From: Isurus oxyrinchus
Lineage: Eukaryota
Assembly (NCBI GenBank): GCA_026770705.1
Contig: JANJGN010000121.1
Span: forward strand, 744,001 to 808,000
Length of the DNA stretch: 64,000 nucleotides
Direction: 5' to 3'
Shown here: positions 4,836 to 34,411 of the stretch, one piece after another
Layout of the letters: every line of letters starts with the position of its first letter
How positions within the stretch are numbered: position 1 is the stretch's first letter
Position numbers and translations under genes: made by a program
The notes under the pieces: generated by a model
What the model saw: only the letters and a program-made list of their open reading frames with translations
The model's database searches: none
What the model was told of the DNA's origin: nothing

Positions 4836-4956
4836 TATAATTTGTTGCCATTCTCCTCAGTATTGACCATCCCCCCAATTCAGCCTCATCTGTAAATTTT
4901 GAGTCTAGCGGATCCACAAACCATCCAGAGTTAAATATTGATATTTCTCTCCCCAG

Positions 4957-5325
4957 TTGGACTGTCACAAGAGTGGAAAGGTGACACTCCACGAGAGGTG
5001 ACAGCGCAGGAAGGTTCGTGTGTACAGATTCCATGTCATTACAGTTATCCATCGTGTCTGGAAAACCAACCGCGAGGTGGAGTCTGGTTTAATAATGAGG
5101 AACAGATTCCCTGGGCTCCCATTGCCTTTCACTCCAAGGATCACAGTCATGAGTTACCACGTTTCCACAATCGGACCCGGCTGTCTGGAGACCTGAAACA
5201 TGGCGACTGTTCCCTGATTATAAACAACATCAGACGGGAAGATGCAGGACCTTATTTTTTCAGAATAGAATTTGACAATGGTCCGAGCCATAACTATTAC
5301 CCTGTAACCCAGCTTCACGTTTCTG
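4957..5325 (+). CDS. Gene A V-set exon V2 (Siglec-type, 'acidic' C-C' type)
   Basis: Acceptor ccccag, donor G/GTAAGT, phase 1-1, open frame, motifs GSCVQIPC, GDCSL and YFFRIE. Confidence 0.92.
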
Positions 5326-6053
5326 GTAAGTGCTGTGTTATAATTACTCATTAATTCACATCCAACACTCAATGGGAAATAACACAAACTGTGACGTTTA
5401 CATATTAACACAAAACACAGCTTATTATAACACACTGTCTGATTCTCAATAACCTGGTGATAGCTTCCAGTTCAGTCCTAAAGCAACCTCTAATACTCAC
5501 TTTAATGACAATGATTAAATGTATTGACTGTGTCCATCAATGTTATCAGGTTATCCACTCCCATCGATCTCTCTAATCCTGTCTTGAAGTCTGACATATC
5601 GACAGAAGAAAGATTCACATTTCTGTAGCACCTTTCACCACCTCACCACGGACGAAATCACTTCACAGCCAATGAGCTGATTCCTGAATTGTAGTTACTG
5701 TTGTAATGTGAGAAACACAGCAGCCAATTTGTGCACAGCAAGCTCCCACAAATTGCAAAGTAATAAATGGCCCAGATTGCTGAGTGAATGATGGGGTAGT
5801 GCACTCCAAACTCTGGTCTGCTCCTTCACCCTCACCCACTATTATCAGTTCAAGTGTCTCGGAGTGAACGTGTATTAAGCTGAGAGACAGAAATACCAAA
5901 GTCTCAAAGCAGGAAATTCTCTCCTGATCATTGTAATCTCTCAGATCTGATATCATCCTTGTAAAAGTGCTTTTTCTTGTGGGACTGTGATTTCTATTTG
6001 AACTGATGCTTCACGTTATATTTCTCTAAAAGGATCCATTCTCTGTCTGTTAG

Positions 6054-6350
6054 ATTTCACAGATAAACCCACGATATTCCCTGCTGAAATTATTGCAGGA
6101 AAGCGTGTGGATGTAAGCTGCACCTTCAACACAACGTGCAATGGAACAGCAGCACCTGTCTTAACCTGGGACACTCCCACTGACGTACGTGGATCAGTCT
6201 CAAACACTGTAACTCAGCATGGTGTCAGTCTGACCTATACTTCTGTTCTGACCCTGATCCCATCACTCAAACACCACGGACACACTCTCAGCTGCAGAGT
6301 GAGATATCCATCTGTTTCATCGGAGCGGACCCTCGTACTAACTGTGCAAG
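6054..6350 (+). CDS. Gene A C2-set Ig exon (Siglec domain 2)
   Basis: Acceptor ctgtctgttag, donor G/GTAAGT, phase 1-1. Encodes DFTDKPTIFPAEIIAGKRVDVSCTFNTTCNGTAAPVLTW...HHGHTLSCRVRYP...LTVQ, with the extra Cys typical of Siglec D2. Confidence 0.92.
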
Positions 6351-6673
6351 GTAAGTACGGACACCCTTCATTCTACATCAGCACTCCCTCAGCGCTGACC
6401 CTCTGACAGTGCAGCCTGTTCTCAGTATCCACATTCTCATGCCTCTCAAAGTGCTTCACAGTCGATAGAAGTTAACTGATCTTTATTTGATTGTTGCTGA
6501 ATGAAGAGACAAGCTGTCTAAACTTTACATCTCACACACATTATTTTCCATGGCAACACCTCCTCCAATCAGTGACCACTTGCTGATTAACCAGCACTCT
6601 CTTCCCTTTGAATATAAATTGTTGTTCACTTTCTGTTGGTAAACCTGCAATCTGTCTTGTTGAGTCCGGTCCT

Positions 6674-6825
6674 GACATCTGAATATTACAATGAACAGAA
6701 CAAGTTCCAACAATGAGCTGTGGTTGGTGATTCCTCACGTTACATCCAGGGACACTGGAGACTATCAGTGTGCTCAGAGAATGAACATGGAGCAGTGGAG
6801 GGGTTCATAACCATCACTGTGGAAC
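6674..6825 (+). pseudogene. Gene A remnant of C2 domain-3 exon (5' half and acceptor lost, 1-nt deletion)
   Basis: Nearly identical to 30590-30742, but has cagtgtgctcagagaat instead of cagtgtgtggcagagaat (frameshift), and upstream homology is absent. Confidence 0.85.
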
Positions 6826-7946
6826 GTTAGTTAAGACAAACTTCAACATCTCTCTCAGATTGAAACACTACAACAACACACATAAATATACAGCCTTATA
6901 TCGACACCTGCAGACACACAATCCCACATCTATGAGCACACACAAAGACACACTCACAAACAAACACACTAGCACATACTCCCCTGTGGATTACCTGACC
7001 TCCCTCAGTGCTGCACCGGTGAGTTGACCTGGATTCTGGGATTTGTGTTCCCTTTCATATTTATGGAAGAATATGGAAATTGCAAAGTCTATTACAGACA
7101 CTCAGATGCACAGAGATACTCACAGATACTCTCTGCCTCTCCAACTCTCTATCCTCCTTTAAGAACCTTCCTGAAATCTAACTCTTTGACCAGTCACCTG
7201 TCCCAATTCCTCCTTACGTGATTTTGTGTGAAATTTTGTTTGAGTATTTGAGAGTAAGAGGAAAGTGGAGAGGTTTAGGAAGGGAATTCCTGTTGCTGAA
7301 AAGCTTACATCAAGTTCTCAGCTTTCCAGTGCCCATTTTTCACATGATGTCCAATGTCCTTGTTCATAATGGGGATTGCCTATGTAAACGTCACGCTGTA
7401 GTTACACTCTCCCACCAGTGGTGGCACGGTCGCACTTAACCCTTGCATCTCCAAGCTTTTCAAGCAATTTCACTTCCTAATTTCCTACTATTCACCTCAA
7501 CCATTCCCTGTGGGAGCGAGTTCCACATTCTCCCCTCTCTCTGGGTAAAGATTGGAACTGTTTATTAAGCGGGGGGTGTAAGTCCGTGGGGGAGTCCATC
7601 TCGATCCTGCCCGATTCGCACACGCGTCCGAGATGGATTTCCACCCGGCACTAAACGTTTCCAGAATTTTCTACAGCACAATCCTGTACACAGCGATGGA
7701 GAGAAACATTGGACAGGGAGTCCAACAGCACAATGATCCATTCTCACCAATGTTCCACGCTAAGGGGAAAGTTCCGATTGTCCACTCTTAGAGTGTTTAC
7801 AATGAAAACATTCATTCCACATTGAATCCCAGTGAATGGGTCAATATTACAGCAAATGTTGCAGTGATATGAAGCTTGATTGTTCAGCCAGAGTGAGAGA
7901 TTGAAAGCGGAGAGTCAGTGATGATTTCTTTCTGTGTGTTCTCTAG

Positions 7947-8086
7947 ACAGTGGAGGAGAGATTCTGCACGTGATCCTGATCCTGGGAATACGAGCTGTGA
8001 TATTCCTTGTGGCTGTGGTTATCACTATCGCTGGAGTCTGTGTCTGGGAGAGACAAACAGTGAAAGGAAGTCGACAGACTGTTTGA
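7947..8086 (+). CDS. Gene A transmembrane/terminal coding exon with intramembrane Arg and short tail (activating-type)
   Basis: Acceptor ttctttctgtgtgttctctag, phase 1. Encodes DSGGEILHVILILGIRAVIFLVAVVITIAGVCVWERQTVKGSRQTV*, with Arg codon CGA at 7991-7993. It is not in the ORF track in this frame. Confidence 0.82.
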
Positions 8087-8194
8087 AGCTTTGTACAGCA
8101 ACAATCTGGTCAGTCAGTGTGGACAAATAACGTGTGATGTTGGGTTAAGTTGTAATGAAACTGGTCAGTGTCCTGGTTAGAATCACCTTCGTAT

Positions 8195-8805
8195 CAGAGA
8201 GGCATTCCAGCACAGTGGGAGCCCATTCAGCCCATTGAGTCCATGCTGCCTCTCTGTAAAGCAATACAGTCAGTCCCATTCCCCCGCTCTATCCCCGTAT
8301 CTCTGCAAGTTTATTTCCTCTCAAGTGTCCATCCAATTTCCTTTTGAAATCGTTCATCGTCTCAACTTCCACCATCCTCGTAGGCAGCGAGTTCCAGCTC
8401 ATTACCACTCGCTGTGTAAAAAAGTTCCTCCTCACATCGCCCCTCTGCCCAAAACCTTCAATCTGTGTCCCCCAGTCCTTGTCTCATCAGCTAATGGCAA
8501 CAGCTTCTCTTTGTCTGCCTTATCTAAACCCATCATCATCTTGTACACCTCGATCAGATCCCCCCTCAATCTCTTTTGCTCCAAGGAGAACAACCCCAGC
8601 TTCTCCAACCCAACCTTGTAGCTAAAATCCCTCATCCCTGGACCCATTCTGCTCAATCTCCTCCCCACCCTCTCAAGGACCCTCACTTCCTTCCCAAAGT
8701 GAGGAGACCAGAACTGGACACAATACTCTAGTTGTGACATAACCAGAGCTTTATAAATGTTCAGCATAACCTCCCTGTGTTTGTACTCAATCCCTCGATT
8801 TATGA
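8195..8805 (-). mobile_element. CR1-type LINE 3' fragment
   Basis: Peptide LEYCVQFWSPH...LGLFSLEQKRLRGDLIEVYK. Confidence 0.8.
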
Positions 8806-9163
8806 AAAGCTTATTCTTTCCATCAGCACAAACAGCAATTTCCAAGCGGACTCCCATCAGCAGACAGAGTGCAATGAAACATCGGCATGCCTGCTTCTTA
8901 ATGTACGGAGAGAAACCTGCAACGAGAGATTCTCCTTCTTCTCCTCAGCAAGCTGAAACTTTTCCTTATACCTGGTGCTCCCCAGTCCTGCTGTGTGGAC
9001 ACATCTTAACCACGGCACTGTCTGGCTGTGTGCAGCCAACATGGTCGAATAGGAATGAACAGAAATGTGACGTTGCTAAACTCTGTTCTCTGATTGGAAT
9101 GTGCTTTCTGAATGCTGCACCTTTTTCATGCTGCGATAGATTGTAAGAAGCATTTGTGTTATG

Positions 9164-9169
9164 AATAAA
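9164..9169 (+). terminator. Candidate polyadenylation signal of gene A
   Basis: AATAAA at the end of a block (9025-9170) homologous to sequence 3' of the terminal exons of genes B (39975-40100) and C (62788-62900). Confidence 0.5.
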
Positions 9170-9524
9170 ATTACATTGATTTACTCAAGTGATTAAAATG
9201 CTCAGCCTGTTCTGTAAATATTTATAGATTAAAATTCTTATTTTGAAGCCAAATTTTTGGCTCAAAGACATTACTTCATGTTGTCACATTTGTTCTATCA
9301 TACGAATTCCTGTGCCCAGCTTTATAATAGAAATTTCCCATGTAAACATGTCACATTGTAGTTTCACACTCCTGCCAGTGGTGGTGCCATTCCAAAGCTG
9401 TCTTGCTGCACCAAACTGAGAAATATTCTCGACGTGTACATGATGTTGTTGTTACACGGACATCAGGCGGAACCTTGGGCAGTGCCTAGAATGCACTTAG
9501 GACAGTGCAGACCACGCTCAGAAC

Positions 9525-11375
9525 TGACAGTGCAGCGTTTCCTCAGTGCTGACCCTCCATCAGTGCAGCGTTCCCTCATTACTGTCCCTCTGACAGTGCT
9601 GCACTACCTCATTATTGACCCTTTTCAAGTGCAGCACCCCGTCAGCACTGACCTTCTGACAGTGCAGCACTCCCTCTTGGATGACAATCTGGCAGTGCAG
9701 CACTCCCTCAGTACTCACTCACCCACAGTGCAGCATTCCCTCAGTACTGATCCTCTGATACTGTATCCCTCCCTCACTACTGACCTTCCGACAGTTCAGC
9801 ACTCCCTCAGTACTGACGCTCCCACAGTGCAGCACTCCCTCAATTCTCACCCTCCCACAGTGCAGCACTCCCTCTGTACTCACTCTCCCGAAGTGCAGCA
9901 CTCCCTCAGTACTCCCCCTCCCACAGTGCAGCACTCCCTCAGTACTCCCCCTCCCACAGTGCAGCACTCCCTCAATTCTCACCCTCCCACAGTGCAGCAC
10001 TCCCTCAGGACTCACCCTCCCACAGTGCAGCACTCCCTCAGTACTCACCCTCCCACAGTGCAGTACTCCCTCAGGACTCACCCTCCCACAGTTCAGCCCT
10101 CCCTCAGTACTCACTCTCCCGAAGTGCTGTGCGAGTTGTTTCAATCAAGACTGGTGCCCCAAGAGGGAGGTTTCATTGCTAAATCATTGAATTCCGTGAA
10201 AATTATTTTTAGGCTTACGGGAACAAGACTTAGTTCCTCAAATCCTTTCTTTTGCAATAACACACAGTACAAGAATCTCTGTTTAAATAAATTCCAGTTA
10301 AACTTTGCCATGAAAGGATATCTCCTCACGCTCCGCTCTACCTCAGTACTAACCCTCCCACAGTCCGGCACCCCCTCAATACTGACCCTCCAACTGTGCG
10401 GAACTCACTCAGTACAGACCCTCCGACAGTGCAGCACTCCCACATTACTGACCCTCTGACAGTGCAGCCCTCCCACATTACTGACCCTCTGACAGTGCAG
10501 CACTCCCTCATTACTGACCACCTGACAGTGCAGACCTCCCACATTACTGACCCTCTGACAGTGCAGCCCTCCCACATTACTGACCCTCTGACTGTGCAGC
10601 CCTCCCACATTACTGACCCTCTGATAGTGCAGCACTCCCTCATTACTGACCACCTGACAATGCAGACCTCCCACATTACTGACCCTCTGACAGTGCAGCC
10701 CTCCCACATTACTGATCCTCTGACAGTGCAGCACTCCCTCATTACTGATCCTCTGACAGTGCAGCACTCCCTCAGTACTCACTCTCCCACAGTGCAGCAC
10801 TCCCTCAGTACTCACACTCCCACAGTGCAGCCCGCGCTCAGTACTCACCCTCCCACAGTGCAGCACTCCCTCAGTACTCACCCTCCCACTGTGCTGTGCG
10901 AGTTGTTTCAATCAAGACTGGTGCCCAAAGAGGCAAGTTTCAAAGCTAAATCATTGAAATCTGTGAAAATTATTTTTAGGGTTATGGGAACAAGACTTAG
11001 TTCCTCAAATCCTTTCTTTTGCAATAACACACAGTACAAGAATTGTGTTTAAATAAATTCCAGTTAAACTCTGCCATGAAAGGATATCTCCTCACACTCC
11101 ACTCTACCTCAGTACTAACCCTCCCACAGTCCGGCACCCCCTCAATACTGACCCTCCAACTGTGTGGAACCCACTCAGTACAGACCCACCGACAGTTCAG
11201 CACTCCCACATTATTTACCCTCTGATAGTGCAGCACTCCCTCATTACTGACCCTCTGATGTTGCAGCACTCCCACATTACTGACTCTCTGACCGTGCAGC
11301 CCTCCCACATTACTGACCCTCTGATAGTGCAGCACTCCCACAGTACAGTGCTGCTGACAGTGCAGCACTCCCTCC
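9525..11375. repeat. 33-bp minisatellite (cagtgcagcactccctcagtactgaccctctga) with a ~770-bp higher-order duplication
   Basis: Directly visible tandem units; an AT-richer spacer occurs twice (~10125-10330 and ~10892-11095). Confidence 0.9.
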
Positions 11376-11601
11376 ATAATGATAACAGGGATCGTTGAAA
11401 TGTATCATAAGGCCAGAGACCTGTATTGGGAACTCTTATCGCCTGAGTTTCAGCCTCCGAGGTGAGGGGGAGGAGTCTAATCCCACGGAGCCAATGGAGA
11501 AGCTTGATGACTACAGCTGCCCAAATATGAGCTGACAGATCATCACATGGTAAACGTTTTGCTGAGAGCACAAAACATCCTCGATCTTCTCACTGGTTAC
11601 C

Positions 11602-11619
11602 CACTTCCTCATTTTATCT
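11602..11619. promoter_or_regulatory. PU.1/Spi-B site with overlapping GATA motif in the putative gene B promoter
   Basis: CACTTCCTCATTTT (reverse complement AAAATGAGGAAGTG, PU.1 consensus) overlapping TTATCT, about 130 bp upstream of a G/GTAAGT donor at 11743. Confidence 0.6.
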
Positions 11620-11649
11620 CACAGTGACACATCAACCCTTTCTAATTAA

Positions 11650-11742
11650 ACACACAGAGGGAGCAGCACAGGAAGAGGTCATTCAGCCCAAGCAGAGCGT
11701 GTGGGCAGTTCCTCCCCAGGCGAGCAGTCGGACAGGTCCTGG
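11650..11742 (+). other. Gene B putative non-coding first exon (start approximate)
   Basis: Non-repetitive sequence ending in a consensus donor GG/GTAAGT. The next exon (12151) has an acceptor upstream of its ATG, so a preceding 5'UTR exon is required. Confidence 0.55.
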
Positions 11743-12192
11743 GTAAGTAACGGAACGATTGGAATTCACTTCCACCACCAACACCGTCCTTTGTTGATGT
11801 TGTGACTTTATAAAGACAGATTCCAATGATTGATGCCTTTGAAAGATTTCTACTGATTATTGAGATCTGGGTGTGAGGCTCAAGTCTGTTGTACAGAACA
11901 TCTTTCTAGCTCAAGGGATGAGAGAAGTGCAGAGACATGAGCTTTGGGACGTCTTGAGGTGGTGAAAGGTGCTATAGAAATGCAAATCCTTCAATGTTTT
12001 TCTTTCTTAAAGCCTTGTAACTCTCTGTAGAGCACCTATCATCCCACAGAGAATCAAATTAGTCTGTCAAGACATTGTCCAAAAACAGTTCTGATCTCTT
12101 GAGAGCTGTCGGACAAGAGGTGAGGTCTCATTAACTCCTTTCTCTTTCAGAGTTTGAGAGTCAGAAGCTTATGAAATATTTGGGAGTGGACA

Positions 12193-12232
12193 ATGATCGG
12201 GAAATCCTACTTCCTCCTGTCACTTCTCCAAG
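12193..12232 (+). CDS. Gene B signal-peptide (leader) coding part of exon 12151-12232
   Basis: Acceptor ctttctctttcag, then ATG giving MIGKSYFLLSLLQ + G/GTAAT in phase 1. Joins in frame to any V exon (MIGKSYFLLSLLQVGLSQEW or ...AEPSQEW). Confidence 0.82.
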
Positions 12233-13869
12233 GTAATAACATCGTCAGCTCGGACAGGTTTATGGCTAGTAGTCTTTGTAAAAGATCATTCTTATTGAGC
12301 TCTGATAGGGAACTGATTCAGCAGTGAGCCAGTGTACAAACGCACACCAAGTCCCATTCACCCATCACCCCTGTGCTCACTGATATACACTGATTCCCTG
12401 TCTGACAGCAGAATTGGAGGAAAGCAGAGATCTCAGAGGGTTTTAGGGTTGGAGGAGGTTACAGGGATCGGGAGTGTAGAGGGGGGATGGTGGGGTAAGA
12501 AATCGATGATGAGAATTTGAAATTTGAGTCATTGCTGGACTGGGAGCCAGTGTAGGTCAGCCAGTGACAGGGGAGCGATCGGCTGAATAGAGAATCAGGA
12601 ACACCAACTGGGGGATGAAGTCTATCCTGATGCTGGGACTCGAATAACAATGCCCTGAAATTTTGTGTCTTTTGCTGATTTTGTCAGAATTTCCCATGAA
12701 GACAACACAGCAGCTCCTAGAATAGACAGGTTGTTCAGTGTCACACTTCCTGTCCATTCTCACCTTGCTAGATACTTCAATAAGGGAGCAAGATAACTGA
12801 AAGAGAGAAGGAAGGCAAAGCTGTCCGTGTGTAAAACTGTCAAATATTCTGAGTTCTCATGAGTGTCTCTGATCTGCTGCAGAGTTTAAATTTCACAGAA
12901 TCTGAGCACTTTGCAGCTCAGAGAGAGACCATTGACTCACTGCCTGAAAGGGCGGTGGAAGCAGATTCAACAGGAACTTTCAGAAGGGGAACTGGATAAA
13001 TACTTGAAGGGGACATTTTGCAGGGCTGTGGAGGAGAGAGCAGAGGTGAGAGTGGGACTAATTGGACAGATCTTTCAAAGGCCCAGCACAGGCTCGATGG
13101 GCCAAATGGCATCTTTCTGATCCGGATCATTCTACAATCTGATAAATTAAGCCCCACATCAGTAACTCTTCAGGCTCCTGCTGCAGGGATGGATCTTTGA
13201 GAAGGACAGGGAACAAGAGGTTCCTGGTATCATTTTCATATTTCTTGACAATTACATAAGTGTATAGATCTGTTGAGTATTTGAGTCTCTAAAGCGTAGA
13301 GGTAATCTGCTGTTATGTCGAGATCTTGTGGTGGCAAAATTGTCTGGAGGTTTCTTTAATTGCTCACATTGATCTGTGGGATTGTCATTCTTTGATGTTG
13401 TCCCTGGTTTCAATTGACATTACACCCTTGATGCAATTGAGGAGGCTTTAAACTAATATGGCAGGGGATGGGATCCCGAGAGGAGGTTCAACAGGGAGAG
13501 ATGCACAGCCAAAATTAGAAGAGAGCAAATGAACCTGGAAGGCATAGAAATTATTGGCCATTTAAGGCTCAAGATAGCGTGGCAAAGTTGGATTGTATTA
13601 ATTTTAATGCAAGGAGTCTGACAGACTTGAATTCTCCTGCAGGTGTAATGTTGCAGCTGCCTTGAAACTGCCAATATTGTTGAATCTTTCTGCATATTTC
13701 AATGTTATGTCATGAACTGAGTTTATGGGATAGTTTCTGAGACTGGGACAGACATAAATCCATTGGCTTTCAGCCGGACCGGACAATCTTGGAAGTGGGT
13801 GGGGCCAGAAAATCCCACCCCTATGGGAACATTTTCAGTTTATTTGATGTGCCCAGAGAGATCAATAAA

Positions 13870-15600
13870 GACCACAATCCACAATTTATTGGCAAGCCAC
13901 GTCAGGATATGTGTGAGAGGTGGAATATCGATCACCGCTCCTAGTCTCGTCGTGTACATCATCGCCATTTCCTGGTTTGTCAGTCACCACATGTATATGT
14001 TCCTGATGGGATAGCGGATGGTCATTCTTATTGCTTGAAGTTACCCCGTTGTGCAGGGTTTGTTTGGATCAGCGCACGGCTCTTTGTAGCTGCATCAGCC
14101 TTTGCTCTAGTGCCCTGCTGCTGTCAATGGCCCTTTCTGCCACAAGCCTTGCAGGATTGGTGGAAAGCTGGGCATTTCCTTGGTGCCTGCAGAAGGCCAC
14201 ACCTTCCACACGTCTCACTAGGTTTGGATGTTCTAGTGAGTGTGTCAACAATTGATGTTGTACTGAGGACCTGTAAGCTTCGTTGACCTGCGAGGATCAC
14301 TTCGTATTTATGTCCATCCTTGAGTAGCTCTTCAATGCTATAGGTTTTGGTCTTATCTAGCAGATCTTTCTGGAAGGCTTCCATGGGAGTGGATGCGATC
14401 ACCAACTCAACAACTCTGTCCGCAGACTCTGTGTTTGAAATCACAGTGCGTACCCTTTTCTCTACATCGGCTGATGAAGTGGTCTATGGATTGTGTAGGC
14501 TGATGAAATGACATAAACTCTAGTTGATGAATATGGAGTTTCACCTGATTCTGAACCTGTCTTCCAATATCGTCCATATCTATTGGGGATCCTTTCGCTC
14601 TTCTGCTGTTAATCCTGATGTGTTCAGCCTGTGTAGACATTCATTCCCAATCACGAGGTGAATTTTTATGGCTTGTTCGTCTGGTTCAGTCACACCTGAA
14701 TCAGGAAACCAGAGCTCTGTATGCTGTTTAAACATCCTGAATTCAGATAGTCGGTCAGCTACATCCCAGTTCAAACTGGGGAATTTCGTGGACATTCTGA
14801 CAATATTCCTTTGACCTTCCTTATCCTACAGGACCTGGGATGAGTGTCGCTTTAGCCCCTTTCATGCGCTTTTCCGAAGCTCTGCCCACGGAGACGGGTT
14901 GTGGCAGGAACACACCACGGAGTAATGGAGTCTTTGTTTTTTATTCAATTTGCTGTTCATCAAACTCAAAGCCGTCCGTTATAATCACTAACTTGTCTGG
15001 GCTGATTTTTATAATGGTTTTTGTGTGTTTGACTCTCCCTTGCTCACTATCGATCCAGCCCACACCCTGGTCACTCGCCTTCCCTGACTGAGCTAACCCG
15101 CTGCTGGTCCTGGCGATACACACTGTCCCACTCACTGACCTACAGGCTGTGTGCTGTAATCTCACCACGAGGGATCCGTCTGCTCCCCAGCTCTTTACTT
15201 GAGCTCTTTCCCGTCACTGTGTCTTCAAAGGTTTCCTGAGCAGTCAGTACACTGCGATTTCAACCCTCTCTGATGCTGTGTCTCTGTTGTGGTCTGACCA
15301 AAGCGTCGAGGATCGTCTCATGTCATCTAGCTCGATCTAAGGCTGTTCACCGCGTCGTACCTGTACTGAATCTTGCTGCCTGAATGTTTGGCCACCGCCG
15401 ATCACCATGTTGTGTTTTTATAATGATATAAAGGCACCAGCCACTGATACGGAATTGGGTAAATACATTGTGGGTTCAGTTATTTAGAATAGTGACATGA
15501 GAACAGATATACAAGGATAGAAAGCTGGGAGACACCTGCAGCCAAACTGTGTGAGCTGTGTTCTGCTCACAGGCCAAAGTGAAACTTGGACTGGATGGTG
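13870..15600 (-). mobile_element. Degenerate Ty3/Gypsy-like LTR retrotransposon (gag, PBS-like site)
   Basis: Minus-strand gag-like peptides MSTKFPSLNWD..FRMFKQ and QSIDHFISRCR, zinc knuckle CPAFHQSCKACGRKGH, and PBS-like TGGTGATCGGCGGTGGC at 15391-15407 (minus). Confidence 0.7.
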
Positions 15601-17514
15601 TTACCATCCCAGCTGATGTTACTACTGGGCAAGTCAGATCCCAGGGTGGAACTCAGCTTGACAGGTCCTAACTTTTATTTTTTATTTAGGAATGTGGAGT
15701 GCGGCTACTGAACAGAGTCATAGGAGTCATCTGATGAACTTCTAACAAAAGAATAAAACATTTATTAAACTAGGAAAGACAAACTATATGACATTACTCA
15801 TTCACCCAGATCTATACCTTTGCAGATTCATAAGTAGAACACAAGTTACGATAACTATCTTATGCTCTCATGTTCACACTATGTACACAGTCGATGTAAA
15901 CCAATAGACGACCTGTGGTCAGGGACACCACATTCTGAAAGCAAGTGGCAGAGCCCACTTGAAACAAATTCTATGTCTCATCTGACCCCAGACGCTTGTT
16001 GCACTGTGAGCCAACCAGTCTCACTGAAAAGCTTCTTTCATATGAGGGTTTCCAATCTCCACTCTCCAAGAACTCACTTTGGAATCTCCTCCAACATGAC
16101 ACTTTCACTCAGACACCTTCCACAAGGGTCCACTTTCACTATTTCAAACTCTCCTTCCCATGCTCCTGCCCCCTGGATCGCCACGTGCATTCAGCATTCC
16201 TTCCACGCCCTGTCTCTCCAATGCTCAGCCGTGTCAATGGAACACCATGGCTTCACATGGCCGTAGTAATGAGTCACCAACCTGTGGTGTCTCCTAGGAT
16301 CTTCTGGCTTCTCACAAGCCTATTTTGCTTTAGGCCTGTGTCCTGCTGCTTTCTCCCTTTATGCTTGAAGCCTTCTTCTGCTCCTCACTCTTAACTTCAC
16401 TTAACAGGGCCGTTTCCAGATTTGACTAGAAGGTTTTCTTGGGCCCTTTCTCCTGTCAAACTCGACAGTTTTGGCTTCTTCTTTACTTTGGGACTGACTA
16501 TCTGTCCCGCTCCTTTGCTGCTTCTCCTGGCAACTCCTTTCAACTGAACTAAAAGTACTTTTCTGTTTTTCTCGGTCTCTGTGGGTCCTTCCCTCTGGAT
16601 CACTGTTGCTAGGCAACAGCACAGTTTCTTACACCTTGTATTTGTTTTGACTTCCCTTCAACAGTCATAAAACCTCAATGGAATGCTGGCTTCTTTTTAA
16701 CTCAAGTTCCCCCTTTTCTCAACACCCAAATACAGAAATACAAACTAAACTTGAACTTAAAGATAGACCTTTTGCCTAACACACACAAATACACATAGAA
16801 CTTACTTAAGCGAACACCAGTTCCTAAAAATCACATGACAAACTTCCCCTCGAGTGATGTCATGCTGCTGTCCCTGAAAGGCATATTACAACCGTGTTAT
16901 CACTTGGCAGGTGATGTGTGCCAGGCAGACCAAGTCCCTGAGAGAAACCTGGTCACACTATCATAATGATTTTGCAATTTGCATTTATTATGAGATGTGT
17001 GCACTGAATTCAGAAGCACTAACTCCACCAATACCTTTAGAGATTTAAAACAATAAATAAACATATTTGTCATCAAAATAAAGGATTTCAAGCACATACA
17101 TAACTACAAGACTGCTATCATAACTCCTAAAATTCCTAATTAACCTGACTCCCAGTTACAGTCCCTTTAAGGCAACAGACCAAAAATAGATGTTAGATTT
17201 AAAACAAAATCAGCAAGTTAACCCAATGCCCCGGACAATGGAATTCCAAATGCATTGTCCCCAACTTCAGTTCTGTTGGAGAGCAGACTTCTGCACAAAC
17301 AGGGTCCTGAGGACCATGAACCAATGTAGAATGAACTTTTCCGCTTTTGTGTCCAGGATTCTCTTCCATCTGGTGTGATACTTGTGGAGTTCATTGTGTG
17401 TCCTGTAGATGGTCCACACTGCAGCCACTGTGCCCGAGTGATGGAGGGGGTGGATATCGAGTCTAGTGGATCAACAAAACATCCAGAGTTAAATATTGAT
17501 ATTTCTCTCCCCAG

Positions 17515-17892
17515 TTGGATTGTCACAAGAGTGGAAAGGTGACACTCCACGAGAGGTGACAGCGCAGGAAGGTTCGTGTGTACAGATTCCATGTCATTAC
17601 AGTTATCCATCAGATTTGGTAAAGAAACCACATGTCGGAATCTGGAAAATGAGAAGATACATACGGAACAAATGGTCTAAATGGTCTATAGCCTTTCACT
17701 CCAAGGGTCACAGTCACGAGTTATCACAGTTCCACCATCGGACCCGGCTGTCTGGAGACCTGAAAGATGGCGACTGTTCCCTGATTATAAACAACATCAG
17801 ACGGGAAGATGCAGGATATTATTTTTTCACGATAAAATTTGGCAATGGTCCGAGACATAACGTTTCCCCTGAAACCCAGCTTCAGGTTTCTG
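17515..17892 (+). CDS. Gene B V-set exon V3 (basic type; essential Arg replaced by Thr)
   Basis: Canonical splice sites, phase 1-1, open frame. YYFFTIKF instead of PYFFRIEF (ACG at 17829-17831). Confidence 0.9.
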
Positions 17893-18144
17893 GTAAGTGC
17901 TGCGTTATAATTACTCACCAATTCACATCCAACACTCAATGGGAAATAATAGTGTTTGATTTGCTTGTTTTTTGGCCGTGTTAACCAGCGTCACTATTTT
18001 TAATGATTTGTCTATTTCTGCTCCCAGATCCATGAGCTTATTGTGTGTGATTGAATCCACATCATAGCTGTAACGTAAACCGAGCTGAGGGGTGATGACA
18101 CCTCCCCCCTGAGTGAAGTGTCTCCTCCCCACTACACCTTCCAC

Positions 18145-20122
18145 CCCTCACACTGTCCGTGTAAACCCCCGTCCCATCTCCAGCCTCTCTTTCCCCTCCA
18201 AAGTCCTTGAACGTGTTTCCATCTCCCGAATCCGGTTACATCTTTCCCAGAACTCCATGTTTGAATCCCTCCAATCAGGTTCCCACCCCAGCCACTGTGC
18301 TGAAACAGCTCTTATCAAGGTCACAAATGGCATCCTGTGTGACTGTGACAAAGGTCAACTTTCCCTCCTCGTCCTTCTCGATCTGTCTGCAGCCTTTGAC
18401 ATGCTCGACCACACCATCCTCCTCCAACTCCCCTCCACTGTCGTCCAGCTGGGTGGGACTGCTCTCTCCTGGCTCCATTCTTATCCATCTCATCGTAGCC
18501 AGAGAATCACTTGCAATGGCTTTGCAGCATCATCTGAACAGTGTTAGTTTTCACCTGTCCACTGAGGATCCCCAGCTCTACCTCACCACCACCTCTCTCG
18601 ACTCCTCCACTGCTGCTAAATTATCAGGCTGCTTATCCGACATCCAGTACTGGATGGGCAGAAATTCCCTCCAATTAAATATTGGAAAGACTGAAGCCAT
18701 TGGCTTCATTCCCCGCTCCAAACTCTGTTCCCTTGCTACCAATTCCATTCCTCTCCCTGGCAGCTCTCTGAGATTGAAGCCAATCTGTTCACAGCTTTGT
18801 TGTCCCATTTGATCCTGAGATGAGCTTCCGGCCTCATATCTGCGCCCTCACTAACACCGTCTATTTCCACCTCCATAACGTCGTACGACTTCACCCTGTC
18901 TCAGCTCATCTGCTGCTGAAACCCTCATCCACGCCTTCATTACCTCCAGACTCGACTGTTCCAACACATGCTCTACACTCCATAAACTTGAGGCCATCCA
19001 AAACTGCTGACCACGTCCTTACTCACACCAAGTCCCGTTCCCTTATCACCCGCTCTGCTCGATGACCGAGACTGGCTCCTGGTCAAGCAAAGTCTCAATG
19101 TCCAAATTTTTGAATATTTTTCCTCCCTATTACAGTAATCTCCTCCTTTATCTTCATCCACGGCAACATTCCCTATCTCAGGAGCCTCTTCCAGTCCCTA
19201 CAACCCTCTCTATCTCAGGAGCCTCCTCCAGTCCCTACAACCCTCCCTATCTCAGGAGCCTCCTCCAGTCCCTACAACCCTCGCTATCTCAGGAGACTCC
19301 TCCAGTTCCTACAACCCTCCTATCTCAGTACTCTCTTCCAATCCCGAAAACCATTCCTATCACTGCAAACTCCTCCGGACCCAACACCCCTCCCTATCTC
19401 TTTAACCTCCTCAAGCCCCGATAACCCTCACGATATTCGTAGCCTCCTCCAGTCCTAACAACCTCCCCTATCTCTGCAACCTCCTCCAGACCGAATACCT
19501 CTCCCTATCTCTGTAAGCTGGTCCATCTCTTACAACCCTTCATATTTCTGTAACCTCCTCCAGCCCACTACAACCCTCCCTATCTCTGTAACCTCCTCCA
19601 GTCCCTAAGAGTTTCCTTTATCTCTGTAACCTCCTCCAGCCATTATAACCCTCCCTATCTCTGTAGCCTCCCTCAGCCCCAGCCACACTCCATATCTATG
19701 TAACCTCGTCCTGCCCTTACAACCCTCCCTATCTCTGTAACCCCATCCTGCCCCAAAAACTCCCCCATCTCTGTAAACTCCTCCAGTCCCTGCAACCTTC
19801 CCTACCTCTGAAACCTCCACCAGCCTTTCCAACCCTCCCTACCTCTGCAATCCGTCCAGCCCCTACAACTCTTCCTATCCCTGTAAACTCCTCCTGCCCC
19901 TAAAACCCTCTCTGCCCTTGCAGCCTCCTCCAGTCCCTACACGCTCCCCATCTCCATAAACTCCTCAAATCCCTACAGCCCTCCCTATCTCTGCAACCTC
20001 CTCCAGGTCCTACCACCCTCCCTATCTGCGTAACCTCCTCCAGTATCTACAGCCCTCCCTATCTCTGTTACCTCCTCCAGCCCCCACAAACCTCCCTATC
20101 TGTGTAACCTCCTCCAGCCCCT
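18145..20122 (+). mobile_element. L2/CR1-group LINE RT fragment plus C-rich minisatellite (paralog of 1695-3200)
   Basis: Near-identical ORFs 18113..18812 versus 1664..2363. Confidence 0.8.
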
Positions 20123-20189
20123 GATGGAAGGTGGGTCGAGTGGGTCAGTCACTTGCATGTTTATTCTGCAGCTTTAATATTTTAAGATG

Positions 20190-20965
20190 GTAAGAATGTA
20201 GGAACATAAGAAATAGGGACAGGAGCAGGCCATTCGGCCCCTCGAGCCTGCTCTCACTGATCTGGTTGTGGCCTTAACTCCATTTTCCTGCCTGTCCCCC
20301 AAACCCTTGACTCCCTTGTCGATCAAAAACCTGCCTCACTCAGCCTTGAGTCTATTCAATGGCCCAGCCTCCACTGCTCTCTGGGGAAGAGAATTCCACA
20401 GGCTAGCGCCTCTCTGAGAGAGGAAATTCCTCCTCATCTCAGTCTTAGATGGGAGCGCCCTCATTCTGAAACTGTGCTCCCTGGTTCTAGATTCCCCCAC
20501 GAGGGGGAAACATCCTCCCAGCATCCACCCTGTCAAGCCCCCTCGGAATCGGATATGTTTCAATAAGGTCACCCCTCATTCTTCTAAACTCCAATGGATA
20601 CAGGCCCAACCTGCTCAACATTTCCTCACAGGACAAACCCTTTAATCCCAGGAATCAGCCCAGTGAACCTCCTCTGGACTGCGTTCAATGCAACTCTATC
20701 CCTCCATAATTAAGGAGACCAGAACTGTACACACTGCTCCTGATACAATCTCACCCTGTGCAGCTGTTGCAAGACTTCCCTCCTTTTATACTCCATCCCT
20801 TTGCAATAAAGGCCAACATTCCACTTGCCTTCCTCATTCCGTGGTGTTCCTGAATGCTGACTTTCTGTGATTCATGTACAAGGACACCCAGAACCCTCTG
20901 TACTGCATTCTGCAGCCTGTCTCCATTTAAATAATATCCTGTTTTTCTATTCTTCCTGCCAAAAT
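20190..20965 (-). mobile_element. CR1-type LINE fragment (paralog of 4110-4835)
   Basis: ORFs 20336..20572 and 20751..21179. Confidence 0.78.
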
Positions 20966-21083
20966 AATTTGTTGCCATTCTCCTCAGTATTGACCATCCC
21001 CCCAATTCAGCCTCATCAGTAAATTTTGAGTCTAGTGGATCCACAAACCATCCAGAGTTAAATATTGATATTTCTCTCCCCAG

Positions 21084-21452
21084 CTGAACCATCACAAGAG
21101 TGGAAAGGTGACACTCCACGAGAGGTGACAGCGCAGGAAGGTTCGTGTGTACAGATTCCATGTCATTACAGTTATCCATCGTGTCTGGAAAACCAAACGC
21201 GAGGTGGAGTCTGGTTTAATAATGAGAAACAGATTCCCTGGGCTCCCATTGCCTTTCACTCCAAGGATCACCGTCACGAGTTACCACGGTTCCACCATCG
21301 GACCCGGCTGTCTGGAGACCTGAAAGATGGCGACTGTTCTCTGATTATAAACAACGTCAGACAGGAAGATGCAGGACCTTATTTTTTCAGGATAGAATTT
21401 GACAATGGTCCGGGACATAACTATTACCCTGTAACCCAGCTTCAGGTTTCTG
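21084..21452 (+). CDS. Gene B V-set exon V4 (acidic type)
   Basis: Acceptor ccccag, donor G/GTAAGT, open frame, YFFRIE. Confidence 0.9.
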
Positions 21453-24400
21453 GTAAGTGCTGTGTTATAATTACTCACCAATTCACATTCACCACTCAAT
21501 GGGAAATAATAGTGTTTGATTTGCTTGTTTTTTGGCCGTGTTAACCAGCGTCACTATTTTTAATGATTTGTCTATTTCTGCTCCCAGATCCATGAGCTTA
21601 TTGTGTGTGATTGAATCCACATCATAGCTGTAACGTAAACCGAGCTGAGGGGTGATGACACCTCCCCCCTGAGTGAAGTGTCTCCTCCCCACTACACCTT
21701 CCACCCCTCACACTGTCCCTGTAAACCCCCGTCCCATCTCCAGCCTCTCTTTCCCCTCCAAAGTCCATGAACGTGTTTCCATCTCCCGAATCCGGTTCCA
21801 TCTTTCCCGGAACTCCATGTTTGAATCCCTCCAATCAGGTTCCCACCCCAGCCACTGTGCTGAAACAGCTCTTATCAAGGTCACAAATGGCATCCTGTGT
21901 GACTGTGACAAAGGTCAACTTTCCCTCCTCGTCCTTCTCGATCTGTCTGCAGCCTTTGACATGCTCGACCACACCATCCTCCTCCAACACCTGTCCACTG
22001 TCGTCCAGCTGCGTGGAACTGCTCTCCCCTGGCTCCATTCTTATCCATCTCATCGTAGCCAGAGAATCACTTGCAATGGCTTTGCAGCATCATCTGAACA
22101 GTATTAGTTTTCACCTGTCCACTGAGGATCCCCAGCTCTACCTCACCACCACCTCTCTCGACTCCTCCACTGCTGCTAAATTATCAGGCTGCTTATCCGA
22201 CATCCAGTACTGGATGGGCAGAAATTCCCTCCAATTAAATATTGGAAAGACTGAAGCCATTGGCTTCATTCCCCACTCCAAACTCTGTTCCCTCGCTACC
22301 AACTCCATTCCTCTCCCTGGCAGCTCTCTGAGATTGAAGCCAATCTGTTCACAGCTTTGTTGTCCCATTTGATCCTAAGATGAGCTTCCGGCCTCATATC
22401 TGCGCCCTCACTAACACCGTCTATTTCCACCTCCATAACGTCGTACGACTTCACCCTGTCTCAGCTCATCTGCTGCTGAAACCCTCATCCACGCCTTCAT
22501 TACCTCCAGACTCGACTGTTCCAACACATGCTCTACACTCCATAAACTTGAGGCCATCCAAAACTGCTGACCACGTCCTTACTCACACCAAGTCCCGTTC
22601 CCTTATCACCCGCTCTGCTCGATGACCGAGACTGGCTCCTGGTCAAGCAAAGTCTCAATGTCCAAATTTTTGAATATTTTTCCTCCCTGTTACAGTAATC
22701 TCCTCCTTTATCTTCATCCACGGCAACATTCCCTATCTCAGGAGCCTCTTCCAGTCCCTACAACCCTCTCTATCTCAGGAGCCTCCTCCAGTCCCTACAA
22801 CCCTCCCTATCTCAGGAGCCTCCTCCAGTCCCTACAACCCTCGCTATCTCAGGAGACTCCTCCAGTTCCTACAACCCTCCTATCTCAGTACTCTCTTCCA
22901 ATCCCGAAAACCATTCCTATCACTGCAAACTCCTCCGGACCCAACACCCCTCCCTATCTCTTTAACCTCCTCAAGCCCCGATAACCCTCGCGATATTCGT
23001 AGCCTCCTCCAGTCCTAACAACCTCCCCTATCTCTGCAACCTCCTCCAGACCGAATACCTCTCCCTATCTCTGTAACCTCCTCCAGTCCCTAAGAGTTTC
23101 CTTTATCTCTGTAACCTCCTCCAGCCATTATAACCCTCCCTATCTCTGTAGCCTCCCTCAGCCCCAGCCACACTCCATATCTATGTAACCTCGTCCTGCC
23201 CTTACAACCCTCCCTATCTCTGTAACCCCATCCTGCCCCAAAAACTCCCCCATCTCTGTAAACTCCTCCAGTCCCTGCAACCTTCCCTACCTCTGAAACC
23301 TCCACCAGCCTTTCCAACCCTCCCTACCTCTGCAATCCGTCCAGCCCCTACAACTCTTCCTATCCCTGTAAACTCCTCCTGCCCCTAAAACCCTCTCTGC
23401 CCTTGCAGCCTCCTCCAGTCCCTACACGCTCCCCATCTCCATAAACTCCTCAAATCCCTACAGCCCTCCCTATCTCTGCAACCTCCTCCAGGTCCTACCA
23501 CCCTCCCTATCTGCGTAACCTCCTCCAGTATCTACAGCCCTCCCTATCTCTGTTACCTCCTCCAGCCCCCACAAACCTCCCTATCTGTGTAACCTCCTCC
23601 AGCCCCTGATGGAAGGTGGGTCGAGCGGGTCAGTCACTTGCATGTTTATTCTGCAGCTTTAATATTTTAAGATGGTAAGAATGTAGGAACATAAGAAATA
23701 GGGACAGGAGCAGGCCATTCGGCCCCTCGAGCCTGCTCTCACTGATCTGGTTGTGGCCTTAACTCCATTTTCCTGCCTGTCCCCCAAACCCTTGACTCCC
23801 TTGTCGATCAAAAACCTGCCTCACTCAGCCTTGAGTCTATTCAATGGCCCAGCCTCCACTGCTCTCTGGGGAAGAGAATTCCACAGGCTAGCGCCTCTCT
23901 GAGAGAGGAAATTCCTCCTCATCTCAGTCTTAAATGGGAGAGCCCTCATTCCGAAACTGTGCTCCCTGGTTCTAGATTCCCCCATGAGGGGGAAACATCC
24001 TCCCAGCATCCACCCTGTCAAGCCCCCTCGGAATCGGATATGTTTCAATAAGGTCACTCCTCATTCTTCTAAACTCCAATGGATACAGGCCCAACCTGCT
24101 CAACATTTCCTCACAGGACAAACCCTTTAATCCCAGGAATCAGCCCAGTGATCCTCCTCTGAACTGCGTTCAATGCAACTCTATCCCTCCATAAGTAAGG
24201 AGTCCAGAACTGTACACACTGCTCCTGATACAATCTCACCCTGTGCAGCTGTTGCAAGACTTCCCTCCTTTTATACTCCATCCCTTTGCAATAAAGGTCA
24301 ACTTTCCACTTGCCTTCCTCATTCCGTGGTGTTCCTGAATGCTGACTTTCTGTGATTCATGTACAAGGACACCCAGATCCCTCTGTACTGCATTCTGCAT

Positions 24401-24937
24401 CCTGTCTCCATTTAAATAATATCCTGTTTTTCTATTCTTCCTGCCAAAATAATTTGTTGCCATTTTCCTCAGTATTGATCATCCCCCCAATTCAGCCTCA
24501 TCAGTAAATTTTGAATCTAGTGGATCCACAAACCATCCAGAGTTAAATATTGATATTTCTCTCCCCAGCTGAACCCTCACAAGAGTGGAAAGGTGACACT
24601 CCACGAGAGGTGACAGCGCAGGAAGGTTCGTGTGTACAGATTCCATGTCATTACAGTTATCCATCGTGTCTGGAAAACCAACCGCGAGGTGGAGTCTGGT
24701 TTAATAATGAGGAACAGATTCCCTGGGCTCCCATTGCCTTTCACTCCAAGGAACACAGTCACGAGTTACCACGGTTCCACCATCGGACCCGGCTGTCTGG
24801 AGACCTGAAAGATGGTGACTGTTCCCTGATTATAAACAACATCAGACAGGAAGATGCAGGATCTTATTTTTTCAGGATAGAATTTGACAATGGTCCGAGC
24901 CATAACTATTACCCTGTAACCCAGCTTCACGTTTCTG
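21453..24937 (+). repeat. Second copy of a ~3.5-kb tandem duplication (first copy ~17893-21452) carrying L2 + minisatellite + CR1 + V exon
   Basis: Matching ORFs at offsets of 3560 (18113/21673) and 3485 (20336/23821); 75-bp minisatellite indel. Confidence 0.92.
24569..24937 (+). CDS. Gene B V-set exon V5 (acidic type)
   Basis: Acceptor ccccag, donor G/GTAAGT, open frame, YFFRIE. Confidence 0.92.
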
Positions 24938-25749
24938 GTAAGTGCTGTGTTATAATTACTCAACAATTCACATTCAACACTCAATGGGAAATAACACAAA
25001 CTGTGACGTTTACACATTAACACAAAACACAGCTTATTATAACACACTGTCTGATTCTCAATAACCTGCTAATAGCTTCCAGTTCAGTCCTAAAACAACC
25101 TCTAATACTCACTTTAATATCAATGATTAAATGTATTGACTGTGTCCATCAATGTTATCAGGTTATCCACTTACATCAATCTCCCTAATCCTGTTTAAAA
25201 TTCTTACATATCAACAAAAGAAAGATTTGCATTTCTATAGCGCCTTTCACCACCTCTGGACGTCGCAAATGGATTCACAACGATTGAAATAATTCTTGAA
25301 ATGTAGCCCTTGTTGTAATATAGGAAACACAGCAGCCAATTTGTGCACAGGAAGCTCCCAGAAACAGCAATGTGATCAATAACCTGATCATCTGTTTTAG
25401 ATGCCGGTTCAGTGATTGGTTCAAATGGATTCTCTCCTGCTGGGGACAGGATAGAATTTAAATCTGGCAGATTTCAGAGAAAGTAACAAGCCAGTGTGTC
25501 AGGAACTGTGAGCTGCTCCCCCGCCTCACCTGGGATTGTCAATTCAATTGTCTCAAAGTGGAAGTGAATTCATCTGAGAGACAGAAATTCCACTAAGTCT
25601 GAAAATAGGACATTCTCTCCTGATCATTGTAACCTCTCAGATCTGATATCATCCTTGTAAAATTGCTTTCTCTTGTGGGACTGTGATTTCTATTTGAACT
25701 GATGCTTCACGTTATATTTCTCTGAAAGGATTCATTCTCTCTCTGTTAG

Positions 25750-26046
25750 ATTTCACAGATAAACCCACGATATTCCCTGCTGAAATTATTGCAGGAAAGC
25801 GTGTGGATGTAAGCTGCACCTTCAACACGACGTGCAATGGAACAGCAGCACCTGTCTTAACCTGGGACACTCCCACTGACGTACCTGGATCAGTCTCAAA
25901 CACTGTAACTCAGCATGGTGTCACTCTGACCTATACTTCTGTTCTGACCCTGATCCCATCACTCAAACACCACGGACACACTCTCAGCTGCAGAGTGAGA
26001 TATCCATCTGTTTCATCGGAGCAGACCCTTATGCTAACTGTAAAAT
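25750..26046 (+). CDS. Gene B C2-set exon (domain 2)
   Basis: 297 nt, phase 1-1, paralog of 6054-6350, donor T/GTAAGT. Confidence 0.92.
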
Positions 26047-26409
26047 GTAAGTATGGATTCCCTTCATTCTATATTAGCTGTAATAGGATACAATGTGCAG
26101 AGCAAGATCCCACAAACATCACTTGAAGACAAAACAGGTCCTTTTTTATTAGTGATATTGACCAGGGAGAGCTCTTCCTGTATTGAGCCTTGGGATTATT
26201 TATGCCTACCTGATCGGGCAGAGGGGGCCAAGGTTGAACTTAAAAGACAATATAGGATAATATAAATATTGTCTTCATTGATGTCAAAGATTTTGGGGGA
26301 GATGTAGTATAAAAGTTTAATATTAACAATGTAAATAGATAGTATTTATCATCAGTTACTCAAGGTCACATGAGAATAGAACACGGAGAGAGATAGTTCT
26401 ATAGATACC

Positions 26410-30460: not shown

Positions 30461-30742
30461 ATGCACCACAGAATCTCTCAATTACTTCTCTTGATATGAT
30501 TAACGCTTCATCGATCAATATAATTGAGGGGAATTCTGCAGTGATAATCTGCTCTGTCGAGAGCTTCCCAGCTTCTAACCTGACGTGGCGACATCTTAAT
30601 GTCCCAATGAACAGAACAAGTTCCAACAATGAGCTGTGGTTGGTGATTCCTCACGTTACATCCAGGGACACTGGAGACTATCAGTGTGTGGCAGAGAATG
30701 AACATGGAGCAGTGGAGGGGTTCATAACCATCACTGTGGAAC
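30461..30742 (+). CDS. Gene B C2/I-set Ig exon (domain 3)
   Basis: Acceptor atatttttag, donor C/GTGAGT. Encodes YAPQNLSIT...IEGNSAVIICSVESFPASNLTW...DTGDYQCVAENEHG...ITVE, which is CD22/MAG-like. Confidence 0.92.
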
Positions 30743-32734: not shown

Positions 32735-33028
32735 ATAAGCCGGAGATTTCCCAGCAGTCGGAGTGCACTCGGAGATCAGAGGGGGTCACCTGCGTCTGTG
32801 TGGCCACCTCCAACCCACCCGGAGACCTCACCTGGCACCTGCCCAGTGCCAACATCAGTGGTAACCAAACACACGGAGGTTTTGTGTCGTGGCAGGTCAG
32901 AGATGGGCATCTGGTGACTGGTTTCCTCACCCTGATGAGACCCCAGGATGAGGGGGGAGTGATTGCATCCTGCTCGGTTCAAAACCCACATGGGGAAGCC
33001 ATGTTCAAGATGTATCTGTGGGTCAAAG
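32735..33028 (+). CDS. Gene B membrane-proximal Ig exon (MAG domain-5-like)
   Basis: Acceptor ccttccctcctcag, donor G/GTGAGA. Encodes HKPEISQQSECTRRSEGVTCVCVATSNPPGDLTW...SCSVQNPHG...LWVK, with the C-x8-CxC-xxxSNP pattern of MAG-like membrane-proximal domains. Confidence 0.9.
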
Positions 33029-34314: not shown

Positions 34315-34411
34315 GTAGAGACTCCAGTAAATGGACAGTAGGATTGTTCACGGCTGGGATCATGTTGAGTGTTTTCCTGGCTGGAATCTTCATCTTCATC
34401 TGTGTGAGAAA
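34315..34411 (+). CDS. Gene B transmembrane exon (uncharged)
   Basis: Acceptor tgtttttacag, donor AA/GTAAGT, phase 1-2. Encodes GRDSSKWTVGLFTAGIMLSVFLAGIFIFICVRK. Confidence 0.9.

Follow-up and report, generated by a model that had tools for sequence, protein, structure and literature searches.

A stretch of 64,000 nucleotides from the Isurus oxyrinchus genome (GenBank assembly GCA_026770705.1, contig JANJGN010000121.1, positions 744,001 to 808,000 of the forward strand; referred to as the window, in whose numbering all positions are given) contains a Siglec-like receptor gene in which one leader exon is followed by three immunoglobulin (Ig) V-set exons and one D2 exon, and raises the question of how these V exons are used. 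The initial annotation of the locus had read them as interchangeable ligand-binding heads, one of which would be chosen per transcript and joined directly to leader and D2 in a Dscam-like manner, and had named a receptor with three V domains as the alternative. The exons are here termed V3, V4 and V5, belonging to gene 2, and V1 and V2, belonging to an upstream gene 1. We consider it probable, with a good deal of reservation, that the three V exons of gene 2 are spliced in series to give a multi-V ectodomain rather than alternative heads. The alternative of a tri-V receptor has thus become the best-supported reading, on the grounds of a cysteine characteristic of follower V domains, cysteine parity, a splice junction between V exons in RNA-like data and the serial V domains of related proteins.

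The single leader, the three intact V-set exons and the single D2 exon were confirmed with their coordinates and open frames (Table 1). Each V exon is open in one frame, has a length that is a multiple of 3, is of phase 1-1 and is bounded by canonical AG/GT splice sites. V3, V4 and V5 share one acceptor, tatttctctccccag, and one donor, gtaagtgctg; these identical strong sites, at introns of 3.1-5.3 kb, favour serial use. That one leader is followed by three similar exons of the same phase speaks for an exclusive choice among them; Ig exons are generally of phase 1-1, and the phase therefore has no weight for or against exclusive splicing. A tblastn search yielded no C2 exon in the interval 6349-25752, blastn-short no second copy of the leader within the window, and a scan of 12233-24568 for cryptic leaders (ATG, hydrophobic run and phase-1 GT donor) nothing convincing, which upholds the observation that no leader or C2 exon lies among the V exons and speaks against hidden leaders before each of them. 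The leader exon (acceptor ...ctctttcag, donor gtaata) is preceded by another exon and hence is not exon 1 of gene 2. This 5' non-coding exon, whose peptide SSPGEQSDRSW finds its match in the extended N-terminus of the Carcharodon model P0162 and whose frame in the window meets a stop before the ATG at 12193, ends at 11742 and is spliced to 12151, which points to one promoter, upstream of about 11.7 kb, and to a single transcription unit.

The assignment to the Siglecs was borne out by profiles, structures and the cytoplasmic tail. V3, V4 and V5 matched the V-set profile of Pfam (E 4e-13 to 8e-12) and the Ig_CD22 profile (E 6e-10 to 9e-9), V5 matched the solved structures of Siglec-5, -7 and -8, MAG, CD33, Siglec-10 and sialoadhesin (E 2.5e-16 to 2e-11), and D2 matched Pfam C2-set_2 (E 2e-9). 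In the Siglec fold, a disulfide (C36-C169 in CD33) links the first Cys of the V domain to an additional Cys of the C2 domain; this first Cys stands five residues ahead of the B-strand Cys, which itself belongs to the B-E pair within the sheet. The pattern GSCVQIPC...GDCSL is present in every V exon, including the GSCVQIPC Cys that the initial annotation had pointed out in all three, and VSCTFNTTC in D2, of which C..FNTTC is nearly invariant in protein alignment A1, completes the Siglec-type Cys pattern at the level of the sequence, the disulfide bonds themselves being predicted. The spacing of these Cys agrees with that of C36/C41 and C163/C169 in CD33 (UniProt numbering). The tail, with the immunoreceptor tyrosine-based inhibitory motif (ITIM) LLYANI and the ITIM-like TEYAQI, marks an inhibitory receptor of the CD33-related type; gene 2 accordingly encodes such a Siglec-like receptor, which may bind sialylated glycans.

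By their sequences, the V exons fall into two classes, A-type (V1, V3), found in first position, and B-type (V2, V4, V5), found as followers. V2, V4 and V5 have a fourth Cys (YPSC) in the B-C loop, which is missing from V1 and V3. It is located seven residues past the B-strand Cys, at the same position of the fold at which a C2 domain carries its disulfide partner. The differences between the classes are concentrated in the B-C/C-C' region and at the Arg treated below, a point in favour of exchangeable heads. The position of the follower Cys was surveyed in 156 Siglec-type V domains of 118 annotated elasmobranch proteins, with any Cys within 3 columns of YPSC being counted. Such a Cys was found in 3/95 single and 1/23 first V domains, as against 12/15 middle and 18/23 last ones, that is, in 30 of the 38 non-first domains and 4 of the 118 first or single domains; three of the four exceptions have their Cys two or three residues earlier, and one is a truncated two-V model. 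When the set was collapsed at 70% identity and only the exact column counted, 5/9 followers and 0/31 first or single domains retained the Cys (p = 2e-4). As the surveyed domains are related, the counts mainly show a B-type lineage that always stands behind another V. The rule is a modest new point: if confirmed, presence or absence of YPSC would separate first from follower V exons in annotation by a simple sequence criterion.

The numbers of Cys (V3 3, V4 4, V5 4, D2 3) add up to an even total for leader-V3-V5-D2 and leader-V3-V4-V5-D2, and to an odd total for products starting with V4 or V5. Parity is even only with V3 in first place, which supports the serial order; in leader-V4-D2 or leader-V5-D2, as expected from an exclusive choice, the follower Cys would remain unpaired. 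Each V exon had furthermore been taken to start with the end of the signal peptide and to be built for a place directly between leader and D2. First V domains, V3 among them, open with V-GLSQEW, the tail of the signal peptide. V4 and V5 open with A-EPSQEW, in which the signal-peptide-like GLSQ is changed to EPSQ, and many followers in relatives have EPSQ or ELSQ at this place. With the B-C-loop Cys and EPSQ, V4 and V5 thus carry features of non-first domains, contrary to the proposed direct contact with the leader, although the argument from the exon starts is weak because V2 retains GLSQ.

Four sequencing runs were available as contigs placed on 20500-26100 (5.6 kb), a stretch which covers V4, V5 and D2. 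Run X1 is RNA-like, with values of 140-917 in exon bins and 0-40 in intron bins. The other three, X19, X20 and X22, consist of short contigs over introns, i.e. are DNA-like, and were rejected as evidence on splicing. In one X1 contig, TTCACGTTTCT and a G are joined to the start of V5 at 24568/24569, which constitutes a splice junction between the end of a V exon and another V exon; in a second X1 contig, the same 11 letters and a G are joined to the start of D2 at 25749/25750, constituting a V-to-D2 junction. The sequence TTCACGTTTCTG forms the 3' end of V1, V2 and V5. A V-to-V junction in RNA-like data runs counter to an exclusive choice of V exons; it shows that the B-type exon class is used in this manner, not that gene 2 itself was the source of the transcript. 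A protein search with the V5 exon for junction-spanning fragments returned only 3 short annotated proteins.

Automatic NCBI models of other elasmobranchs contain V domains in series, 2-3 in Carcharodon and Cetorhinus, 3 in Mustelus, 3-4 in Scyliorhinus, and 4 in Hypanus and Mobula, in the order A first and B behind. The best protein identities, 93-97%, were obtained with models from Carcharodon carcharias and Cetorhinus maximus, which places the genome with a lamniform-related shark, and the leader peptide (Table 1) was also found in shark Siglec models; a database search for a model of gene 2 from the species itself found none. The models compared with gene 2, namely Carcharodon 'Siglec-13 isoform X2' P0156 (2 V), Mustelus 'Siglec-12' P0160 (3 V) and S. 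canicula P0151 and P0001, have in common with it the same leader, the A-then-B order, a D2 with FNTTC, and a transmembrane segment with ITIM tail, at exon identities to the window of 70-97%. Unlike these, gene 2 has an A-B-B array from a 3.5-kb duplication of its own, and its closest Carcharodon relative by the constant region, P0162, is modelled with one V. The A-B order is conserved between the paralogues and beyond this species, the models of other sharks showing it as domains in series, which argues against alternative heads. The S. canicula models P0151 (X1, 4 V) and P0001 (X3, 3 V) are identical in the last V, D2, D4, transmembrane segment and tail (443 residues), while their leader sequence, also the same, is followed by different upstream V sets (four vs three, about 87% alike); this hints at V blocks that are chosen alternatively, or at neighbouring genes that were merged by annotation.

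An AlphaFold2 (AF2) model was considered for the natural two-V protein P0003, without D2, with a mean predicted local distance difference test (pLDDT) of 69 and mostly 80-92 in the Ig domains. In comparison with the PDB, its V-V pair was superposed on the V-C2 pairs of MAG (Z 17.4, 206 residues, 5.3 Å), Siglec-10 (Z 14.7, 207 residues, 4.1 Å) and CD33 (Z 15.0, 207 residues, 5.5 Å), and on Fab, scFv, CAR, JAML and pIgR pairs at only 6-17 Å. As soft evidence, the superposition is consistent with a disulfide staple between V domains. A predicted complex of V3 and V4 as separate chains scored 0.04, which has no weight either way.

Under serial splicing, the transcript would run leader-V3-V4-V5-D2-D3-D4-transmembrane-ITIM tail, with the A-type V as the first, membrane-distal domain and the B-type V as a follower. 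The B-type V would have gained its B-C-loop Cys where a C2 domain carries the partner of the inter-domain disulfide, such that each GSC Cys could form a bond with the domain that follows (V3 with V4, V4 with V5, V5 with D2) and the V-V disulfides would stiffen a rod of lectin domains. As V1 is the counterpart of V3 and V2 that of V5, the ancestral layout was leader, A-type V, B-type V and D2, with V4 being added later.

V4 is the product of a duplication of about 3.5 kb by unequal crossover, with the V3-V4 intron plus V4 as the parent/daughter unit. The copies of the intron are 92.8% identical between 17893-20043 and 21453-23602, and 94.5% between 19238-21083 and 22724-24568, the two alignments being offset by 74 nt, or two satellite units; V4 and V5 are 96.7% identical at the nucleotide level. 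This is explained by one unequal crossover between V exons at their homologous 3' ends, by which the intron was duplicated together with the B-type exon and V4 arose. That V4 might be an assembly artefact was not borne out: the copies have diverged by 5-7%, and V4-specific sequence is covered without listed mismatches in the three DNA-like runs. The CT-rich 37-bp satellite occurs in introns that follow an A-type V or V4 (at 2699-3200 and in the two tracts given in Table 1), and again at 57823-58826. A LINE-type reverse-transcriptase fragment (…LLDLSAAFD…) is found in the introns after V1, V3 and V4 (1664-2360, 18113-18809 and 21673-22369), copied together with the duplications.

Several points weigh against serial inclusion of all three V exons. 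The donor side of the V-to-V5 junction ends with CACGTTTCTG, like V1, V2 and V5, whereas V3 and V4 of the window end with CAGGTTTCTG, such that the observed junction stems from another allele or a close paralogue; no junction in the X1 contigs belongs unambiguously to gene 2. Depth in X1 is 142-201 over V4 and 740-917 over V5, but contig depth is no basis for ranking segments of one gene, and V5 contigs can lie on V4 by way of stretches of 105, 58, 40 and 35 nt in which the two exons are identical. For both reasons the comparison of depths was rejected as evidence on splicing; together, cross-mapping and the lower depth make the inclusion of V4 presumptive, and the presence in X1 of V4-specific sequence without listed mismatches is weakened by the same cross-mapping. 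The proteins of the relatives are automatic models, which are prone to take in every in-frame exon. Some follower V domains do not have the extra Cys although the preceding V retains the GSC Cys, and the V-V disulfide is deduced from sequence and from a model of medium confidence (predicted template modelling score, pTM, 0.44).

The variant that survives best, though we hold it to be rather unlikely, is an array of variable length, with V3 always first, V5 always beside D2, and V4 skipped in some transcripts, leading to 2-V and 3-V isoforms; in relatives, whole blocks of V exons would be treated in this way. Since all V exons are of phase 1-1, skipping of V4 would keep the frame, and Cys parity is even with or without it; the depth of X1 over V4, far below that over V5, and the different V sets of the two S. 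canicula models in front of the same C-terminal 443 residues point in the same direction. Human SIGLEC12 was reportedly first described, in 2001, with one-V and two-V splice forms. On the other side, the acceptor and donor sequences of V4 equal those of V5, the depth argument suffers from the limits of contig depth and cross-mapping given above, and no V3-to-V5 junction was seen, V3 being outside the stretch covered. A generalization, by which V arrays of shark Siglecs are tunable by splicing, the A-type head being fixed and the number or identity of followers (V4 in gene 2, whole V blocks in the two S. canicula models) set by skipping or by alternative leaders, strikes us as doubtful; if true, an inhibitory receptor could be altered in its reach, its avidity or its specificity, which would amount to germline-encoded diversification in the oldest jawed vertebrates.

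Still less probable, in our judgement, is a partial use of the array in which V3 and/or V4 are silent relics, with an mRNA of the form leader-V5-D2, or leader-V3-V5-D2 with a dead V4. V3 is without the essential Arg of Siglecs, V4 is only 3.3% off V5 (dN/dS, the ratio of nonsynonymous to synonymous substitution rates, 0.67, resting on 12 differences), such that its open frame could persist by chance, and the single V of the model P0162 would fit as well. This is opposed by the intact frames and perfect splice sites of V3 and V4, by the preservation of the A-type/B-type pair in gene 1 as well as gene 2 and in different shark orders, by the extra Cys of V5, which argues for a preceding V, and by the V4-specific sequence in X1, with the reservation already made for cross-mapping.

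What gene 2 shares with Dscam clusters is a tandem array in which similar Ig-domain exons, matching in size and phase, follow a set of common exons. It differs from them in that no device for exclusivity is visible: a steric block by a short intron is not given, the introns measuring 3.1-5.3 kb; U2/U12 incompatibility is not given either, all sites being U2-type AG/GT of the same consensus; nor does a penalty by frame or nonsense-mediated decay (NMD) arise, as double V inclusion is in frame and escapes NMD. A search for docking and selector sequences yielded no complement common to all three V exons. The sole repeated complement is between a GA-rich patch in intron 1 (12435-12468) and the CT-rich satellite, with none ahead of V3; it extends over 15 nt perfectly and over 35 nt at 89%, and is probably a low-complexity coincidence, though it could support pairing in the pre-mRNA. 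With sequence features and the RNA junction both indicating serial inclusion, and with 2-4 serial V domains in the relatives, a mutually exclusive choice of one V per transcript that swaps the ligand-binding head, as originally proposed, has become most improbable.

In Siglecs, the Arg of strand F (YFFR motif) binds the carboxylate of sialic acid. It is kept in V4 (GPYFFRIE) and V5 (GSYFFRIE), in alignment with the Arg of Siglec-5 (YFFRVE). V3 has Thr in its place (YYFFTIKFG, 17810-17875), where V1, V2, V4 and V5 have YFFRIEFD; canonical sialic-acid binding by gene 2, if any, is thus predicted to fall to V4 and V5. The dN/dS is about 1.7 for V1 vs V3, which would suggest diversifying heads and in this respect favour exchangeable ones, and 0.4-0.7 for comparisons within the B-type; with counts this low, the difference does not reach significance (p = 0.1). 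In the inhibitory gene 2 the Arg has thus been lost from the outermost domain, whereas V1, the counterpart in a putative activating gene, still has it.

Among known receptors, Siglec-12 (Siglec-XII in humans) is a CD33-related Siglec with two V-set domains (PMC6288428). Gene 2 is like Siglec-12 in the probable serial arrangement of several Siglec-type V-set domains before the C2 domains, a tail with ITIM and ITIM-like motif, and one V without the essential Arg (R122C in human, Thr in V3 of gene 2), and it is because of such features that many of the shark relatives are labelled 'sialic acid-binding Ig-like lectin 12' by NCBI. Unlike Siglec-12, gene 2 has three V exons, with up to four or more in relatives; its extra V domains make up a follower class of their own, marked by the additional B-C-loop Cys; the V array was independently expanded in elasmobranchs; and the Arg-less V is the outer one owing to a lineage-specific change, as V1 keeps its Arg. 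Orthology of gene 2 to SIGLEC12 is unlikely. A literature search turned up no paper describing multi-V Siglecs of cartilaginous fish, the genes of which are already automatically annotated, but apparently uncharacterized. Against the one V-set head of mammalian Siglecs and the two of Siglec-12, elasmobranchs appear to have evolved series of lectin-type V domains, 2-4 or more in number, possibly by way of a follower V class in which the added Cys staples V to V in the way V is stapled to C2. If confirmed, this would mean that multivalent sialic-acid receptors and paired activating and inhibitory Siglecs were already elaborate in cartilaginous fish.

Table 1. Exons of gene 2 and gene 1 and the introns between the V exons of gene 2, in window coordinates.
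Feature	Position	Strand	Remarks
Gene 2, 5' non-coding exon, 3' end	11710-11742	+	Donor gtaagt; exon start undefined
Gene 2, leader exon	12151-12232	+	MIGKSYFLLSLLQ, 13 codons + 1 nt; phase 1
Gene 2, V3	17515-17892	+	378 nt; A-type (first-position) Siglec V-set
V3-V4 intron	17893-21083	+	LINE reverse-transcriptase fragment and CT-rich 37-bp satellite (19164-20122)
Gene 2, V4	21084-21452	+	369 nt; B-type (follower) V-set
V4-V5 intron	21453-24568	+	Second copy of V3-V4 intron; satellite 22724-23607
Gene 2, V5	24569-24937	+	369 nt; B-type (follower) V-set; joined to D2
Gene 2, D2	25750-26046	+	297 nt; C2-set; B-strand Cys and extra Cys six residues on
Gene 2, D3	30461-30742	+	Ig exon, phase 1-1
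Gene 2, D4	32735-33028	+	Ig exon, phase 1-1
Gene 2, transmembrane exon	34315-34411	+	Membrane span without charged residue
Gene 2, last cytoplasmic exon	39660-39941	+	ITIM at nt 39840, ITIM-like motif at nt 39909
Gene 1, V1	1066-1443		A-type; counterpart of V3, units 89% identical
Gene 1, V2	4957-5325		B-type; counterpart of V5, units 92-98% identical
Gene 1, D2	6054-6350		Same V-V-D2 plan as gene 2

The cytoplasmic region of gene 2 is duplicated, with 95% identity between 34522-35783 and 37445-38703 and about 81% between 36619-36861 and 39660-39941. Two tail cassettes result, the first (36619-36861) with FLYANP and TEYAQI and the second with LLYANI and TEYAQI; the Carcharodon model P0162 holds both in series.

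Gene 1 was traced over 1066-8086, with its leader lying off the window. Near 7947-8086 it has a transmembrane-like exon, the hydrophobic span of which contains an Arg (ILGIRAVIFLVAVVITIAGVCVW), and gene 1 may well form a receptor pair with the ITIM-bearing gene 2, in which it would be the activating partner. The D3-like pieces at 6676-6857 measure about 33 and about 17-28 residues and lie in two frames, with breaks near 6774; at 82-94% identity to the D3 of relatives, they seem to be the remains of an Ig exon that decayed between D2 and the transmembrane exon.

Further downstream, an open frame on the forward strand at 51702-51947 is V-set-like, with about 30% identity to the Siglec V exons, and probably belongs to a different Ig-superfamily gene. 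Tandem arrays of a 33-bp repeat with an open frame (…PTVQHSLSTH…) are located at 9524-11372, between the two Siglec genes, and at 48650-48969 and 61136-61692, one of the latter two being inverted.

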